From Zygophlyctis sp. KS116 (lineage: Eukaryota; Fungi; Chytridiomycota): a stretch of 5,266 nt of DNA. Made by a program: the position numbers and the translations under genes. The stretch spans positions 1 to 5,266 of the forward strand of contig BAAFSQ010000488.1 of NCBI GenBank assembly GCA_054661495.1, read 5' to 3'. The notes beneath the pieces are model-generated. The model saw nothing but the letters and a program-made list of their open reading frames with translations, ran no database searches and was not told where the DNA came from. Of this stretch, positions 1 through 5,266 are shown piece by piece (positions within the stretch are counted from its first letter, which is position 1; each line of letters starts with the position of its first letter).

Positions 1-150
1 TGTAATTTGTGAGCATATTGTAGTGAACCCAACAATATCTGAAAAAAAGATCGTGGCGGATCCAAACGATTCCGGTGATGGGGTAACTCCTTTAAGAAGT
101 TGAGCGGCTGCCTTAGGTGGAAGCATTTGGCCAATCAAATCATTTGCCCT
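1..150 (-). other. Cyclase signalling helix and N-terminal part of class III nucleotide cyclase catalytic domain
   Basis: RANDLIGQMLPPKAAAQLLKG...ATIFFSDIVGFTTICS; first metal-binding Asp codon at 37..39. Residues determining ATP versus GTP specificity lie outside the window. Confidence 0.92.
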
Positions 151-2301
151 CTTATTAGAACTATCAACTTCTGAAACTAATTTCTCCAGCTCTTGCTGTT
201 TTTTTCTTTCGTTCGCCGTATTAGCTTTTTCCAGTTCGACCTAACATGAATGTAAGTTTGCCTACCTCTTCGGTCAGATCTCTCACTATTCCCGTGAATA
301 GATGGGCGCCATCTTCTTTAACCTCTGATACAGACAAAAGAAGCGGGAAATGTGATCCATCTTTCTTTAGCCCAAAGGCACGTCTACTGCCACCAATAAC
401 CTTTTTAACGCCAGTAGTTAAGTAATTGGTGAGATAAGAATCATGTTCCACAGAATAGTTAGAGGGCATCATATCCCTAATATTTTTGCCAAGTACTTCA
501 GAAGAGGAATAGCCAAACATTTTTTCGGCTGCCGGATTGAATCTGCGTATTGTTCCGATTGGGTCAATATTGATAATACCATCCACGACAGTATCCAAAA
601 CACTATTAAGGATTCGTCTCTCCACAAGCATTTTCAATTCAGCATCATGTACAGATGCCTCCATTGCAATTTCCTTTTCTTGAACGCTAGTGATGTTTTC
701 AAGCTCCTGCTCATGGTCCGATCGCAGGCTTTGCAGCTGCAGATCATGAGATTCGTCCAAGTCACGTAGTCTTGCTTGTACAGACAGCTGACAATCCTCC
801 ATCTCTTGTTTCAGAGTCAGTATGAGAATGGAAAGGGCTTCAGCATGTTTTTTTTGCAATGTTTTCAGTGCGATTTTCCCTTTATCCGCGATTTGTTCAA
901 TAGACCCCGCACCATCAGTACGCTCTTCTTCGTCCTCCTGGGTAGTTTCAAACTTAATCTTTATATTGGATATATTAAGACCGTTGGCTGATCTTGAAGC
1001 AACTGATCCGCCTACTACTGATCCACTAAAATCACTCTCGCCTCGATCAACTGATTCTAATGATTCAGCTCTTGACATTGATGCTGAATGTGCCCCAGAC
1101 TGTCTACTACGGCTCGGAGAAGCTGATGAAATTTTAATAGTAGATGCAACAAGCCTACTATCAACATTCCGGTAACGCTGTTGAAGAGCTATTTCTTGTT
1201 GTGATTTCAATGCTCGAATCTGATGTCTATGCATCTGGTTGAGTTTTTTAATTTCAGTGGCATGTTGTATCTCCAGAATCGACACTTTATCTCTTTCATG
1301 TTTTGCAGCAAGTCGTTCCTTTTCTGCAGTCAGTTCCTGATTTTGACAAGTTTCTAGATCTGCCTTTCGACTGATATGCTCTGCTTTCAGCGCTTCTATT
1401 TCGTCGAAACATTTTATATCCAGATCAAATCTTTCTTTTGCTTGTTGAGCCTCAGTTTGCTGGATTTCTCGAAGCTGGTCACCAATTCTCTTATTAAGAG
1501 CTCTATGCCTTTAAATGAAGTTAATTACGTTTGATGGTTGATACGAACTTGTAAGTTCTTTGCTAACGATGCTTTTACTTCTTCTTTCAAATGTCTATTT
1601 TGAATATCATTAATCATTCTCTCATACTGAAGTTTTCTCTCTTGGGAGGCAGCAAGCTGTTTTCTTTGTTTCTCATGAAGACTCTCCATATGTTGCATCA
1701 GAAGGTCAAATGCCGCTCTCTTTCTAGCAAGTATTTCCTTTACTCTTGATGCCACTCTTGATGCCTCCTCTTGAATCATAATGGTTCGATCTCTATTCTT
1801 TGTTTGTCGCATCATAGTTCGCAATGTTTTTTTTGCCAACTTTCTATCCTTTCTCGCCTCAAGAGTCTTTGAGAACGCATCCTTACGTTGGATCAGTTCC
1901 TCCTTTTGTAAAGTTTGAGTGAATGCTATTTCCGCTTCATTTCTTTGGACCATAAAGCCTAGATCTTCCCTATATCTTGCTTCATCTTCAGCTTTTTTCA
2001 TGTTTGCTTCTACAGCCACACAATCATTTCGGACACTTTCAAAGACTGAAAATGCTTTAGCATTCACATGCTCCATAACTGGCTTGATTGCTTCTTCATC
2101 TGCAGCGGATGATCCCTTAGTTATAACTTCTGCTTTTGCTGGCTTGAACTGGCACACTGAATTTGGAGAAGTGGTAGATCCGCCACCACTGGCAGCGGTG
2201 TCCGAAGAAATTGTCGATACACATCCTTTTGACGCATCTTCTGCTAATGGCTTGCGTTCAGATATAATAACTTCTGGCTTTGCAATTCTATCAACTCTCA
2301 T
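1..2301 (-). CDS. Soluble coiled-coil / FixL-like PAS / class III adenylate-guanylate cyclase, 3' end outside window. Exons 2301..1529, 1502..266, 240..<1 (750 aa visible)
   Basis: Two GT-AG introns (1503..1528, 241..265) join ORFs 1525..2301 and 221..1285 and the frame at 240..1 into one stop-free frame. Exon 3 reads VELEKANTANERKKQQELEKLVSEVDSSNKRANDLIGQMLPPKAAAQLLKGVTPSPESFGSATIFFSDIVGFTTICSQIT, i.e. the cyclase signalling-helix motif (MLP..AxxL) and the catalytic FSDIVGFT motif. ATG at 2301 is preceded by an A-run. No transmembrane segment seen. Confidence 0.9.
241..265 (-). other. 25-nt spliceosomal intron, phase 0
   Basis: GTAGGCAAACTTACATTCATGTTAG on the minus strand; removal joins the PAS end (DLTEE) in frame to VELEK and the cyclase domain. 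Confidence 0.9.
266..613 (-). other. PAS domain, FixL heme-PAS-like
   Basis: ILNSVLDTVVDGIINIDPIGTIRRFNPAAEKMFGYSSSEVLGKNIRDMMPSNYSVEHDSYLTNYLTTGVKKVIGGSRRAFGLKKDGSHFPLLLSVSEVKEDGAHLFTGIVRDLTEE; canonical PAS motifs FNPAAExMFGY, G.KDG..FP and RDLTE. Confidence 0.93.
1503..1528 (-). other. 26-nt spliceosomal intron, phase 2
   Basis: GTAATTAACTTCATTTAAAGGCATAG on the minus strand; removal gives RINHQT-ALNKRIGDQLREIQ and an open frame to 266. An in-frame AAG acceptor at 1509 (20-nt intron) is a less likely alternative. Confidence 0.82.
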
Positions 2302-2744
2302 TTTTTATTGTTGTGTAAACTCGTCATGCATCATGTAAACATAGTTTGCTCCAGACCGCAATCTATGAGTAAATTTGAGACAGAACTGTAAACAAACCAT
2401 TTGTCTAAATATAACTCTTAATTACTCGAATGATTACTAAGACTGCGGCCAACTTTGTATCTAGCAGTGTTTGCTATTACTCATTGTTTCCATTAAATAT
2501 GCAAATATTAGCAAATTGTCCGAAACTTATCCAAATCGTCACGTTTTTACGTTTAGCCTTGAATGATTTGCATACCAATAAAAAATATATGTATTGAAAA
2601 TGTCAAATAAAGTATTTATTTCTAATTTGCTCATACCACTTAAATTAAATTCAGGAGAAGGATGACCAACCTTTATAAGTATGACGTCAACAGAAAGCAT
2701 TGTTCTCGAGAACAATACGTAAACATAAAGTTAAACAATATAAA
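2302..2744. promoter_or_regulatory. 443-bp head-to-head intergenic region, probable bidirectional promoter
   Basis: AT-rich non-coding stretch between ATG 2301 (-) and ATG 2745 (+); CCAAT at 2575..2579, TATAA-like at 2674..2678. Confidence 0.6.
2682..2689. promoter_or_regulatory. Perfect CRE/ATF-type bZIP palindrome TGACGTCA
   Basis: Exact 8-bp palindrome about 55 nt upstream of ATG 2745; half-site CGTCA at 2537..2541. Function not demonstrable from sequence. Confidence 0.35.
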
Positions 2745-2816
2745 ATGATATCGATCTCCTTTAAGAAATCTATCTTGGCATTGGCTTTAGCTGCACTTAT
2801 AGCTGGAGTAAATTCC
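2745..2816 (+). other. Signal peptide
   Basis: MISISFKKSILALALAALIAGVNS: basic KK, hydrophobic core, probable cleavage VNS/QA; ATG in AAAATG context. Confidence 0.85.
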
Positions 2817-5266
2817 CAGGCTGTGAACACAGCAATACAATCACATGAAATCAAGGTTATTATTGCAGTAGACAATCTATACAAATTAACTGTCGATGGG
2901 CAGACCATCCCAGTGGATCCCAAATATGGATGGTCAACTATAAATACTCACAAGTTTACTGTGGCAGGAGAAGGACCATGGGTTGTAGCCGTGGATGGAA
3001 TTGACGTGGGTTATGCTTCAGGCTTTTTGGGAGCCGTATATGTTGATGATGTATTGAAAGCAGCTTCAGGGACTACAGATCCTGGCATTATTGATTTCAA
3101 AACAATACTTAATCCATCCGCTGGATGGAATCAGTCTGCAAGTTTTGATGATTCACTTTGGTCTTTACCAGCAGTCTGCAATATCAACCCTTGGGGAGGT
3201 TGGCTAAGTACCTTCCGGTCTTTAACAAAGTCAAATGCTTCTGTCGTATGGTTAGAATCTTGTTGGAAAGTCTGGATGACAGCCTACTTTAGAGTTGTTG
3301 TGACTCCTACAGTTCAAAATATCCCGGAATATTGCAATTCTAGTTCTCCACAATGCTGCCACGTTGTCCGTATCTGGCAATTGATGGGAAAGACAACTAC
3401 AGTTGACCCCAATATCAACAATAGCTGTTGCTCTATGGCTGGAGTTACTTGCAATACAGATCTTGGAACAGTCTTAACGTTGAATTGGACCTCACAAGGT
3501 CTGTCCGGAATAATCCCTTCGAATATTGGAAATTTGCCAAATTTACAAAGTCTGTAAGTCTATTTGCGAATTTAAATATCAGTGACTTGAGTAACAATCA
3601 TCTTTCAGGCACCATACCTGCTGAGATTGGAAATTTGTCTTATTTGCAAAATCTGTAAGAATTTTTGTAATTTAATCTTAAAGTAACTTGACTAACAATT
3701 ATCTCTCAGGAAAAATTATACCTCAGATTGGTAATTTGACAAATTTGATTACGCTGTAAGACTTTCTAATTTAAAAATAGCGGAATGGCCAAAAATAAAT
3801 TCTCGGGACCGATTTTCCCCGAAATTGGTACGCTGAAAAATTTGGTTGATCTGTAAATATTTTTAAATTTAACTGTTAGTAATCTAAGCAACAATTGGCT
3901 GTCAGGAGTATTTCCAACTGAGATTTTAAACCTTCCGAATTTACTAAATCTGTATTTATTTCTTTATGTTGAAAATTACAGTGTTATTTCTAACAATGTG
4001 GATCTCAATGGATTTTATATTGCCAGATGCGGAATTAATATGTAAATCTCTCACATTAAAATTTAAAGAAAAGCAGATGCTACTGAAATTTTATTACGGC
4101 AATGTGTGGCGAATTGCGATTCCTCGTCTCCTCAATGTTGCTGGGTTGTCCGATCATGGCGATTGATGGGAAAGTCATCAAGTGTTGATCCAACTGTACC
4201 AAATGGCTGCTGTTCTATGCCTGGAGTTACTTGCGTCGGGACAAATGTTACAAAGTTAGTTTGGAATCATAATCAGCTGTCTGGACCGATTCCTTTAGAG
4301 CTTGGGAATTTGAGCAGTTTAGAGAATCTGTAAGTTTTTAAATTTGATATTCTAGTCATATGTGGGGCAATCAACTCTCGGGACCAATCCCTTCTGTGAT
4401 TGGAAATCTAAAAAACTTGCGTGAAATGTAACTTCTTTGCGTTACGTTTAGTGAACTTAGCTCGAATCGGCTCAACGGGTATATTCCTCCAGAGTTGGGA
4501 AATTTATCATCTTTAACGGCACTGTATTTTTTGAAAGATATAATATACAGACTCTTGGGATTTAATCAGCTAGATGGACCCATTCCTTCAGAGATTGGAA
4601 ATTTAGCAAATTTGAAATACCTGTATACTTTAACTAATTAACCTGAAAGTCACATTGAACAGAATAAATTATCTGGTATTATTCCGACAGCTATATATCA
4701 GTTGACAAATCTTGAAAGACTGTAAATATAAATATTAAGTAATCGCAGATGGCTCAACAATAATCAACTATCTGGAGAAATATCAACTCAAATCGGGCAG
4801 CTGTCCAAGTTGACTTCATTGTATTTATATATATATCTATAAACTTAAGATTATTACATGTCAATCAATTTGCAGGATCAATCCCTTCAATTGCACAGCT
4901 GAATAATTTGCAAGAAATGTAATGCTCTTTAAATATAACTCATAGTAACCTGAGCGACAATAAATTCTCAGCACTTCCGCTCGCAACCTGTGACTCCTCA
5001 TCTTCTCAGTGCTGCTGGGTTGTCCGATCATGGCAATTGATGGGAAAGACTGCAATGTTGCAATTGATAGGAAAATCATCTCTAGCTCATCCCACCAAAG
5101 AAAATGGCTGCTGTTCTATGCCTGGAGTTACTTGCGTCGGGAAAAATGTTACAAAGTTAGTTTGGAATCATAATCAGCTGTCTGGACCAATTCCTTTAGA
5201 GCTTGGGAATTTGAGCAGTTTAGAGAATCTGTAAGTTTTTAAATTTGATATTCTAGTCATATGTGG
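2745..5266 (+). CDS. Secreted or cell-surface lectin-like domain plus multi-module LRR receptor-like protein, 3' end outside window. Exons 2745..3553, 3583..3654, 3684..3755, 3781..3852, 3880..3951, 3982..4041, 4069..4329, 4356..4427, 4452..4523, 4551..4622, 4650..4721, 4749..4820, 4850..4918, 4946..5230, 5257..>5266 (714 aa visible)
   Basis: Removing 14 phase-2 GT-AG introns gives one stop-free frame with repeats fitting LxxLxLxxNxLSGxIPxEIGNLxx (e.g. DLSNNHLSGTIPAEIGNLSYLQNL, ELSSNRLNGYIPPELGNLSSLTAL, LLGFNQLDGPIPSEIGNLANLKYL). N-terminal signal peptide and many N-x-S/T sequons. Confidence 0.9.
2847..3308 (+). other. Beta-sandwich lectin-like domain (CBM67 / Pleurotus ostreatus lectin-like)
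   Basis: Ordered motifs AVDNLYKLTVDG, GW, VVAVDG, GFLGAV, GWNQSASFDDSLW, PWG, ASVVW, YFRVVV; recognised by pattern recall only, no search run. Confidence 0.6.
3333..5135 (+). repeat. Three copies of a 6-Cys LRR N-cap (3333..3452, 4115..4234, 4989..5135)
   Basis: C-x6-CC-xVVRxWxLMGK-xn-CCSMxGVTC in all three copies, each followed by LRRs. Confidence 0.9.
3554..5256 (+). other. 14 miniature phase-2 introns: 3554-3582, 3655-3683, 3756-3780, 3853-3879, 3952-3981, 4042-4068, 4330-4355, 4428-4451, 4524-4550, 4623-4649, 4722-4748, 4821-4849, 4919-4945, 5231-5256
   Basis: All start GTA and end AG, are AT-rich and 24-30 nt long; each removal restores frame, and 13 fall at the same Leu/Ile codon of the LRR. 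Confidence 0.9.
4201..5266 (+). repeat. Near-identical direct repeat 4201..4365 vs 5102..5266 (offset 901), running off the window end
   Basis: 163/165 identical by manual comparison (4242 C vs 5143 A; 4288 G vs 5189 A), including an identical 26-nt intron. Confidence 0.95.

Follow-up and report, generated by a model that had tools for sequence, protein, structure and literature searches.

Heme-PAS sensors drive kinases, cyclic di-GMP (c-di-GMP) phosphodiesterases and transcription factors, and the swimming of zoosporic fungi is steered by cyclic GMP (cGMP) from rhodopsin cyclases. To our knowledge, every heme-based gas sensor described so far that produces cGMP relies on an H-NOX domain; the globin-coupled adenylate cyclase HemAC-Lm of Leishmania uses a globin heme fold and has cyclic AMP (cAMP) as its output. 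FixL-like PAS proteins of Chlamydomonas, FXL1 and FXL5, reportedly bind heme and O2, so that a FixL-type PAS can apparently carry heme in a eukaryote, and among DosP, HemAC-Lm and the FXL proteins we know of no heme-PAS guanylyl cyclase. Here we describe a gene of the chytrid Zygophlyctis sp. KS116 that joins a FixL-type PAS domain to the start of a class III nucleotide cyclase. It lies on the minus strand of bases 1–5266 of contig BAAFSQ010000488.1 (C488), a stretch of 5266 nucleotides that is called the window throughout and that belongs to an incomplete assembly of 12.7 Mb in 1175 contigs. A preliminary description, made from the letters of the sequence, had proposed a FixL-type heme-PAS fused to a eukaryotic cyclase as a candidate gas sensor. 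We consider the product to be probably a homodimeric, heme-PAS-regulated guanylyl cyclase. It is neither a FixL nor an H-NOX-type soluble guanylyl cyclase: two well-known modules are combined in it in a new way.

The closest described sensor is that of the rhizobial FixL proteins (PDB entries 1dp6, 1d06 and 8js5), which is 46–52% identical to the window PAS over 114 residues without a gap and has in common with it the proximal His, the distal Arg, the hydrophobic distal pocket and the DLT exit into a coiled coil. However, FixL has a histidine kinase as its output, whereas the window gene is predicted to encode a class III guanylyl cyclase, with neither HisKA nor HATPase_c. The window gene is furthermore eukaryotic and spliced, carries Asn and Lys in place of Arg206 and His214, and has a long N-terminal coiled coil where FixL has a first PAS domain or membrane segments. 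Animal soluble guanylyl cyclase (sGC; 6jt0, 8hbe) shares with the fungal ortholog P0005 the layout of PAS, coiled coil, transducer element and cyclase over ∼385 columns, the animal-type catalytic domain and, as predicted for the window protein, heme-based gas sensing with cGMP output. In sGC, however, the heme sits in an H-NOX domain and the PAS is free of cofactor, whereas here the PAS is the predicted heme site; sGC is also an alpha/beta heterodimer, whereas a homodimer is predicted here. The rhodopsin guanylyl cyclases BeGC1/RhGC (6aob, 6sir, 5oyh) come from zoosporic fungi, too: they are built of a sensor, a coiled coil and a homodimeric cyclase with the Glu/Cys (E/C) specificity pair, their catalytic domain is 42–46% identical, and they also have paralogs with degenerate catalytic or sensor residues. 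Unlike the soluble, predicted heme-PAS with a gas as its signal, their sensor is a membrane rhodopsin responding to light. Escherichia coli DosP (1v9y, 9cdr), the second-best match of the PAS domain, likewise couples a heme-PAS to second-messenger turnover, but its output is c-di-GMP hydrolysis. Finally, FixL-like PAS domains with the His/Arg motif stand upstream of a class III cyclase in the diatom sequences P0162 and P0213 (Conticribra weissflogii/MMETSP) and in P0234 of the Leptospiraceae. In contrast to the fungal proteins these have several tandem PAS domains and an adenylyl-type Lys, their linker differs, and the N-terminal coiled coil of the fungal family is missing. They appear to be fusions that arose independently of the fungal family, and all three are candidate heme-regulated adenylyl cyclases.

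A FixL-type PAS domain

All searches were run with single exons of the window gene or with orthologs from the databases. When the PAS piece of 125 residues was compared with all PDB chains by phmmer, FixL heme domains ranked first: RmFixL of Sinorhizobium meliloti (1d06) with E = 5.3e-30 and BjFixL of Bradyrhizobium japonicum (1dp6) with E = 1e-25, both aligned over the 114 residues mentioned above. The heme-PAS of E. coli DosP came next (E = 2e-13), and the top 13 PDB sequence matches were all FixL or DosP. The minus-strand translation of 266..640 includes the motif HDSYLTNYLTTGVKKVIGGSR, opposite which the 1dp6 alignment places hdsyisryrttsdphiigigr, with His200 and Arg220 opposite the His and Arg of the window. 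The likeness to FixL is far above chance. The preliminary description had quoted the FixL sequence correctly, and its further readings of the domain hold as well: the His and Arg codons stand 20 residues apart as CAT and AGA on the minus strand, the BjFixL distal-pocket residues I215, L236 and I238 align without gaps with V, L and V, and the His, placed by it at about residue 611, has exactly this number with the 26-nt first intron described below. At the end of its last strand the window domain has the DLT motif, an exit that is kept in the fungal homologs and in bacterial FixL-like PAS domains (D-I/L-T-E).

Pfam searches gave PAS_9 (1.6e-13) and PAS (3.8e-13), both exceeding the cut-off, at residues 301–413 of the translated exon 2 piece. 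An AlphaFold model of the window PAS, calculated with an alignment of 25 sequences, has a predicted local distance difference test score (pLDDT) of 85 and displays five strands and the Falpha helix. The top 20 Foldseek matches of this model are FixL heme domains, with template modelling scores of 0.79–0.93 and root mean square deviations (rmsd) of 1.0–2.4 Å, 18 of them superposing at an rmsd of 1.0–1.3 Å; DosP follows, and the top 31 are all FixL or DosP. The window PAS is closer to the heme-PAS domains of FixL and DosP than to other PAS classes. Grouping with non-heme PAS families, for which a check had been advised at the outset, was seen neither in the sequence nor in the fold rankings, both of which are led by FixL and DosP.

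Coiled coils, cyclase start and predicted dimer

Upstream of the PAS domain the protein consists of a coiled-coil region of ∼550 residues, which takes in exon 1 and extends over the first 290 residues of exon 2. This region is conserved (E values to 2e-47), and no Pfam or PDB match was found for it; a sub-threshold match to FBF1 in one ortholog was taken as coiled-coil noise. Downstream of the PAS, exon 3 gives a Pfam match to the coiled coil at the C-terminal end of HNOBA (profile positions 176–216, E = 2.1e-5). The matching segment is made up of the signalling helix and the cyclase transducer element directly upstream of the cyclase start. The catalytic domain is then visible for 24 residues only, which match positions 4–26 of the Guanylate_cyc profile (PF00211) with E = 0.0025 and 17.9 bits against a cut-off of 21.9; full-length orthologs score 160–218 bits. 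The codon of the first metal-binding Asp, in the motif FFSDIVGFT, is located at 39..37. An H-NOX domain (PF07700) was found neither in exons 1 and 2 of the window gene nor in full-length orthologs nor in the incomplete assembly, which agrees with the earlier proposal that the gene does not use one. Likewise, HisKA and HATPase_c gave no Pfam match in any exon or in full-length orthologs, the window gene has no GAF domain and no membrane segments, and membrane segments are also absent from the orthologs.

The preliminary description had the PAS lead directly, through a short helix, into a class III cyclase. The order of the two domains stands, but the helix comprises ∼42 residues and in the DNA a 25-nt intron lies in between. 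After splicing, the distance from DLT to MLP is 43 residues, and the same distance is found in 12 of 13 homologs from the word search described below and in most of the wider family. A fixed linker of this kind is what would be expected if the signal travels through the register of a coiled coil. The AlphaFold model of the ortholog P0005 (residues 158–533) accordingly shows the PAS domain, a continuous helix of 42 residues (123–164), a transducer helix (167–174) and the cyclase. Foldseek matched this model to the catalytic domains of animal GC-A, sGC alpha and beta and fungal rhodopsin guanylyl cyclases: the P0005 catalytic domain is 55% identical to that of GC-A and 39–55% identical across sGC and GC-A. 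The sGC alpha and beta chains align with P0005 over the ∼385 columns given above, with PAS and coiled coil included.

A homodimer prediction with heme included yielded a score of 0.55, compared with 0.00 for the best control; among solved structures, 21 out of 30 homodimers and 0 out of 23 single chains attain the mark for homodimers. The runs agree in at least 79% of the contacts, with a partner pLDDT of at least 85. The predicted interface is composed of the N-cap, the PAS sheet, a parallel in-register coiled coil (contacts 304:304, 307:307, 311:311, 314:314 and 318:318) and the cyclase dimer. This score may reflect memory of solved guanylyl cyclase dimers, and we take it as support for likeness to these enzymes, not for binding.

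The residues that specify the substrate, which the preliminary description had advised to read further downstream, lie beyond the end of the window copy and were read in close orthologs, where they are Glu and Cys. Orthologs with 76–89% PAS identity carry the motifs YKVETIGD and MPRYCLFGD, whose Glu and Cys specify GTP, together with the two metal-binding Asp residues and the N/R pair. Every catalytic residue is present in the close orthologs of the window gene. The E/C pair is present in P0005, P0008, P0022, P0181, P0182 and others, amounting to most of the family. An adenylyl cyclase is a very improbable reading of the gene: although its own specificity residues fall outside the window and the first of these positions is a Lys in the diatom and Leptospiraceae fusions, E and C are found in all of the closest full-length orthologs, and the visible start MLPP...FFSDIVGFT matches these E/C orthologs.

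A family in zoosporic fungi

A word search found the same PAS-cyclase architecture in lake metagenomes, at 97%, 89%, 86%, 78% and 71% identity, and in Globomyces pollinis-pini, Paraphysoderma sedebokerense, Coelomomyces lativittatus and Blastocladiella britannica. In a profile search, an alignment of the segment from the PAS to the C-terminus (A1) was compared with 1.84 billion representatives, and ∼30 clusters gave an uninterrupted match over its whole length. Among the named clusters are Polyrhizophydium stewartii, Blastocladiella emersonii (H9P43_008877, KAI9159537.1), Polychytrium aggregatum (XP_052968854.1), Catenaria anguillulae (ORZ40493.1), Sorochytrium milnesiophthora (two paralogs), Boothiomyces, Nowakowskiella (two) and again B. 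britannica. Orthologs thus occur in at least 10 named chytrid and blastoclad species, and all named members are annotated in the databases as hypothetical or generic cyclase proteins. Since members were found across chytrids and blastoclads, the PAS-cyclase family is, judging from its distribution, ancestral to Chytridiomycota and Blastocladiomycota. The metagenomic member P0022 lies between genes for exportin-5 and a dynein heavy chain; together with the mini-introns of the window gene these neighbours indicate a eukaryotic host. The eukaryotic nature of the cyclase gene, claimed from the start, is therefore borne out by its spliceosomal mini-introns and its chytrid orthologs.

In a first set of 19 fungal sequences, the residues equivalent to His200, Tyr207, Thr210 and Gly217 of BjFixL were conserved in all 19 and Arg220 in 18, while Leu236, Ile238 and Phe249 were conserved or conservatively replaced.

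The family also contains degenerate paralogs: P0195, P0203, P0206, P0222, P0216, P0185, P0210 and P0266 lack the first metal-binding Asp, the His of the predicted heme site or both residues. By analogy with sGC and with the RGC/NeoR pairs, this points to obligate heterodimers in which an active chain is paired with a degenerate one.

Origin of the PAS domain

With bacterial FixL-like PAS domains the window PAS shares 50–59% identity. The PAS domains of the fungal guanylyl cyclases come out as one clade (SH-aLRT 91) among bacterial sequences in a quick maximum-likelihood tree, in which the multi-PAS domains of the source genome, described below, lie on long branches. This tree is built on 125 columns, is unrooted and weakly supported, contains sequences picked by similarity and gives no direction of transfer; the nearest outgroup, P0004, with TFIIA on its contig, is itself eukaryotic. 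The bacterial origin suggested for the PAS by the preliminary description is consistent with the identities and with the nested clade, and falls short of proof in view of the tree and of P0004. We regard the fusion of a bacterial sensor with an opisthokont-type cyclase as plausible, though not proven.

Gene structure and assembly context

As read from frames and orthologs, the minus strand of the window holds the 5′ three quarters of a nuclear, spliced gene for a predicted soluble protein of ∼930 residues (Table 1). All three exons are open, and intron 1 shifts the frame by 2 as needed; if intron 2 is left in, the frame stops after 15 codons. Exon 1 matches residues 3–226 of P. aggregatum P0185 (42% identity, E = 2e-47) and also aligns with 21 further full-length orthologs. 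Residues 3–226 and 228–497 of P0185 align contiguously with exons 1 and 2. With an intron 1 of 26 nt the junction is free of gaps against P0185 (Q226-x-A228), and NHQ is separated from LNKRI by two residues, which is also the case in Globomyces P0034; a 20-nt version of this intron (acceptor at 1509, also in phase) was replaced by the 26-nt one on the basis of the ortholog alignment. The orthologs P0005 and P0008 read straight across the second junction. Both introns have the size of the mini-introns in the neighbouring gene of the window.

Table 1. Coordinates of the predicted guanylyl cyclase gene and adjoining features in the window
Feature	Position	Strand	Remarks
Exon 1	2301..1529	minus	ATG 2301..2299; 257 codons and 2 bases of a split Thr codon
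Intron 1	1528..1503	minus	26 nt, GTAATT...ATAG, GT..AG
Exon 2	1502..266	minus	rest of the coiled-coil region, N-cap helix and PAS domain; open frame
N-cap helix and FixL-type predicted heme-PAS	266..640	minus	PAS core 266–613
Predicted proximal heme ligand His611	443..445 (CAT)	minus	equivalent to BjFixL His200 and RmFixL His194
Predicted distal Arg631	383..385 (AGA)	minus	equivalent to BjFixL Arg220, which reads bound O2 in FixL
DLT motif	272..280	minus	end of the last PAS strand, start of the output helix
Intron 2	265..241	minus	25 nt, GTAGGC...GTTAG, GT..AG
Exon 3	240..1	minus	cut by the contig end at position 1
Signalling helix	240..139	minus	within exon 3
Cyclase transducer element	138..88	minus	within exon 3
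Catalytic domain, first 24 residues	72..1	minus	contig end follows
Intergenic region	2302..2744		shared with the divergently transcribed lectin-LRR gene, ATG 2745 (+); from the open reading frame map

Up to the contig end the product has 750 residues. As the orthologs are 830–1140 residues long, ∼185 residues of the window protein are estimated to be missing. A search of the assembly with the exon 3 protein for a continuation beyond position 1 led back to the window and otherwise gave just one match, of 27%, in the cyclase of contig C71. As no other contig continues the gene, the catalytic domain of the window copy is not assembled. The other cyclase loci of the assembly (C71, C219, C80 and C199) do not have a FixL-type PAS.

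The break inside the gene probably results from a paralog on contig C943 (1–1513). Its coiled coil is 49–64% identical to that of the window gene, while its last 39 residues (MEAS…IGTI), which form the N-cap and the start of the PAS directly before the contig end, are identical. An allele was considered and rejected in view of these identities, and we regard C943 as a second paralog. The pattern points to gene conversion, or to a duplication of part of the gene in the very recent past, plus a collapsed repeat in the assembly. Such a break could also prompt the suspicion that a bacterial FixL fragment, misassembled or contaminating, was attached to a eukaryotic cyclase, or that the gene is dead: the contig does end inside the gene, and C943 ends inside the near-identical PAS start, where the assembler broke at the repeat. 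However, a single contig carries both the PAS and the start of the cyclase, with a gap of 25 nt that is a canonical mini-intron of a size typical for the window, the three exons are open, no kinase remnant is present, and ∼30 ortholog clusters from independent genomes have the same architecture. We therefore hold an artefact to be extremely improbable.

Six short metatranscriptome contigs from lake, freshwater and estuary samples of four studies are 97–100% identical to exons 1 and 2, with exact matches at 562–712, 778–1001 and 1095–1351. They show that the organism and the gene exist in nature, and at most suggest transcription.

The same genome contains further FixL-type PAS domains outside cyclases. 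Four, sometimes more, are arranged in tandem on contigs C52, C555, C557, C553, C196 and C68, and additional copies are located on C434, C810 and C98; none of these genes has a cyclase. The domains are only 31–44% identical to the window PAS and nearly all have the motif HD.YL..Y..T. Given that they keep the His motif, this organism has many candidate heme-PAS proteins besides the cyclase. The top scores of the profile search belonged to metagenomic giants (P0129–P0161) of 2300–4500 residues with ∼13 tandem FixL-like PAS domains.

The remaining part of the window (2745–5266, plus strand) carries a gene for a secreted protein with a signal peptide, a domain of ∼180 amino acids without a Pfam match and Cys-rich caps, followed by leucine-rich repeats (LRRs) of 24 residues, several of which are encoded one per 72-nt exon. 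Its mini-introns of 25–29 nt are found at 3554–3582, 3756–3780, 4330–4355 and 5231–5256, and the block at ∼4100–4370 is repeated at 5000–5266.

Proposed mechanism and nature of the ligand

Heme binding, the ligand, regulation and the physiological role are predictions from the likenesses described above. In the mechanism that we propose, two chains would pair in parallel through their N-cap helices, PAS sheets, the in-register coiled coil and a head-to-tail cyclase dimer, with His611 of each PAS holding a b-type heme. A diatomic gas bound to the ferrous iron would move the FG loop and Arg631, as in FixL, and the movement would pass via the DLT junction and the coiled coil of fixed length to the transducer element. 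The geometry of both active sites would then shift and either raise or lower the rate of cGMP synthesis. The cGMP produced would feed the pathway that chytrid zoospores use for phototaxis. For the window gene O2 is most likely the ligand, because the O2-reading distal Arg631 is kept.

Several findings weigh against a heme-PAS guanylyl cyclase of this kind. The partners of the heme propionates in BjFixL, Arg206 and His214, are Asn and Lys in the window PAS; this pair is, however, the commonest at these positions among the recovered bacterial FixL-like PAS domains, which argues for a trait of a subgroup and not for loss of the pocket. Sensing chemistry is not uniform in the family, as P0207, P0222 and P0227 do not have the His that is found in 28 of 31 members of the wider family, and the distal Arg is replaced in B. 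emersonii P0182, in Catenaria P0188 and in one Sorochytrium paralog. The heme of FixL also takes NO and CO, so that, judged by sequence, the ligand could be any of the three gases. Of its catalytic domain the window copy shows no more than the 24 residues, and its assignment to guanylyl cyclases relies on the orthologs. Finally, none of the six metatranscriptome contigs crosses an intron, they contain no exon joints, and carry-over of DNA could account for them; the splicing model hence depends on orthologs and frame logic.

The three members lacking His and the exchange of Arg206 raise the question whether the PAS is free of heme and either binds another small ligand or serves as a dimerization module, as does the cofactor-free PAS of animal sGC within the same PAS-coiled coil-cyclase layout. 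We think this improbable: the His and the whole pocket are kept in 28 of 31 members across the divergence of chytrids and blastoclads, the domain is 46–59% identical to heme-binding FixL-type PAS domains, and no non-heme PAS ranks above a heme-PAS in the PDB sequence or Foldseek results.

The main rival to the O2-regulated enzyme accepts the heme and differs in the signal, which would be NO, CO or redox state; the family would then be the fungal counterpart of NO-sensitive sGC, with a PAS heme in place of H-NOX. Structures of FixL heme domains with bound NO and CO are available (1dp8, 1lsv, 1xj4), no H-NOX was found in the source assembly, and the Arg that discriminates O2 is lost in the B. 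emersonii and Catenaria orthologs and in one of Sorochytrium, so that this reading applies especially to the blastoclad members without Arg. NO-linked guanylyl cyclase activity is reported to control zoospore biogenesis in B. emersonii, and the only candidate named is a guanylyl cyclase with HNOBA, with no heme domain (PMC9730499). However, Arg631 is kept in the window gene and in most chytrid members, no gene for an NO synthase could be found in B. emersonii (PMC9730499), and the absence of H-NOX from an incomplete assembly is weak evidence. For the family as a whole we regard NO, CO or redox sensing as rather unlikely, and we favour the heme-PAS-regulated guanylyl cyclase with O2 as its ligand in the window species.

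Implications for zoosporic fungi

The genome paper of B. emersonii counts 17 cyclase genes and discusses BeGC1, BeGC2 (H9P43_007348) and BeGC3 (H9P43_009044, the gene with HNOBA) for NO signalling (PMC9730499). It relates zoospore biogenesis to NO-linked guanylyl cyclase activity, citing Vieira 2009, and nowhere mentions a PAS or heme domain (PMC9730499). Neither PAS nor heme is mentioned in PMC10622942 or in PMC4046227. The B. emersonii ortholog of the window gene, H9P43_008877, is a different gene from BeGC1, BeGC2 and BeGC3. Our literature search found no published description of a heme-PAS guanylyl cyclase. Sporulation of Blastocladiella is reported to involve ODQ-sensitive NO/cGMP signalling. 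We tentatively put forward a wider possibility, although we would not call it probable: the family may be a gas-sensing guanylyl cyclase of zoosporic fungi in which a bacterial-type FixL heme-PAS and an opisthokont cyclase were joined in the ancestor of chytrids and blastoclads. It might then be the missing heme receptor of NO/cGMP-dependent zoospore formation in Blastocladiella and, in chytrids that keep the Arg, an O2 sensor steering zoospores via the cGMP pathway of phototaxis.

If the proposal is correct, the protein would represent a third independent switch from a gas to a cyclic nucleotide, beside the H-NOX cyclases and the globin-coupled cyclase of Leishmania. As the module is predicted to be soluble, small and homodimeric, it could possibly be developed into a cGMP tool that is switched by a gas, as a counterpart of the optogenetic RhGC. 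It would furthermore provide a candidate heme-dependent cyclase for the NO/cGMP effects in Blastocladiella, for which the genome paper had only the HNOBA coiled coil (PMC9730499). For the zoosporic fungi, which include ecologically important parasites of amphibians and algae, it would constitute a second sensory input to cGMP.

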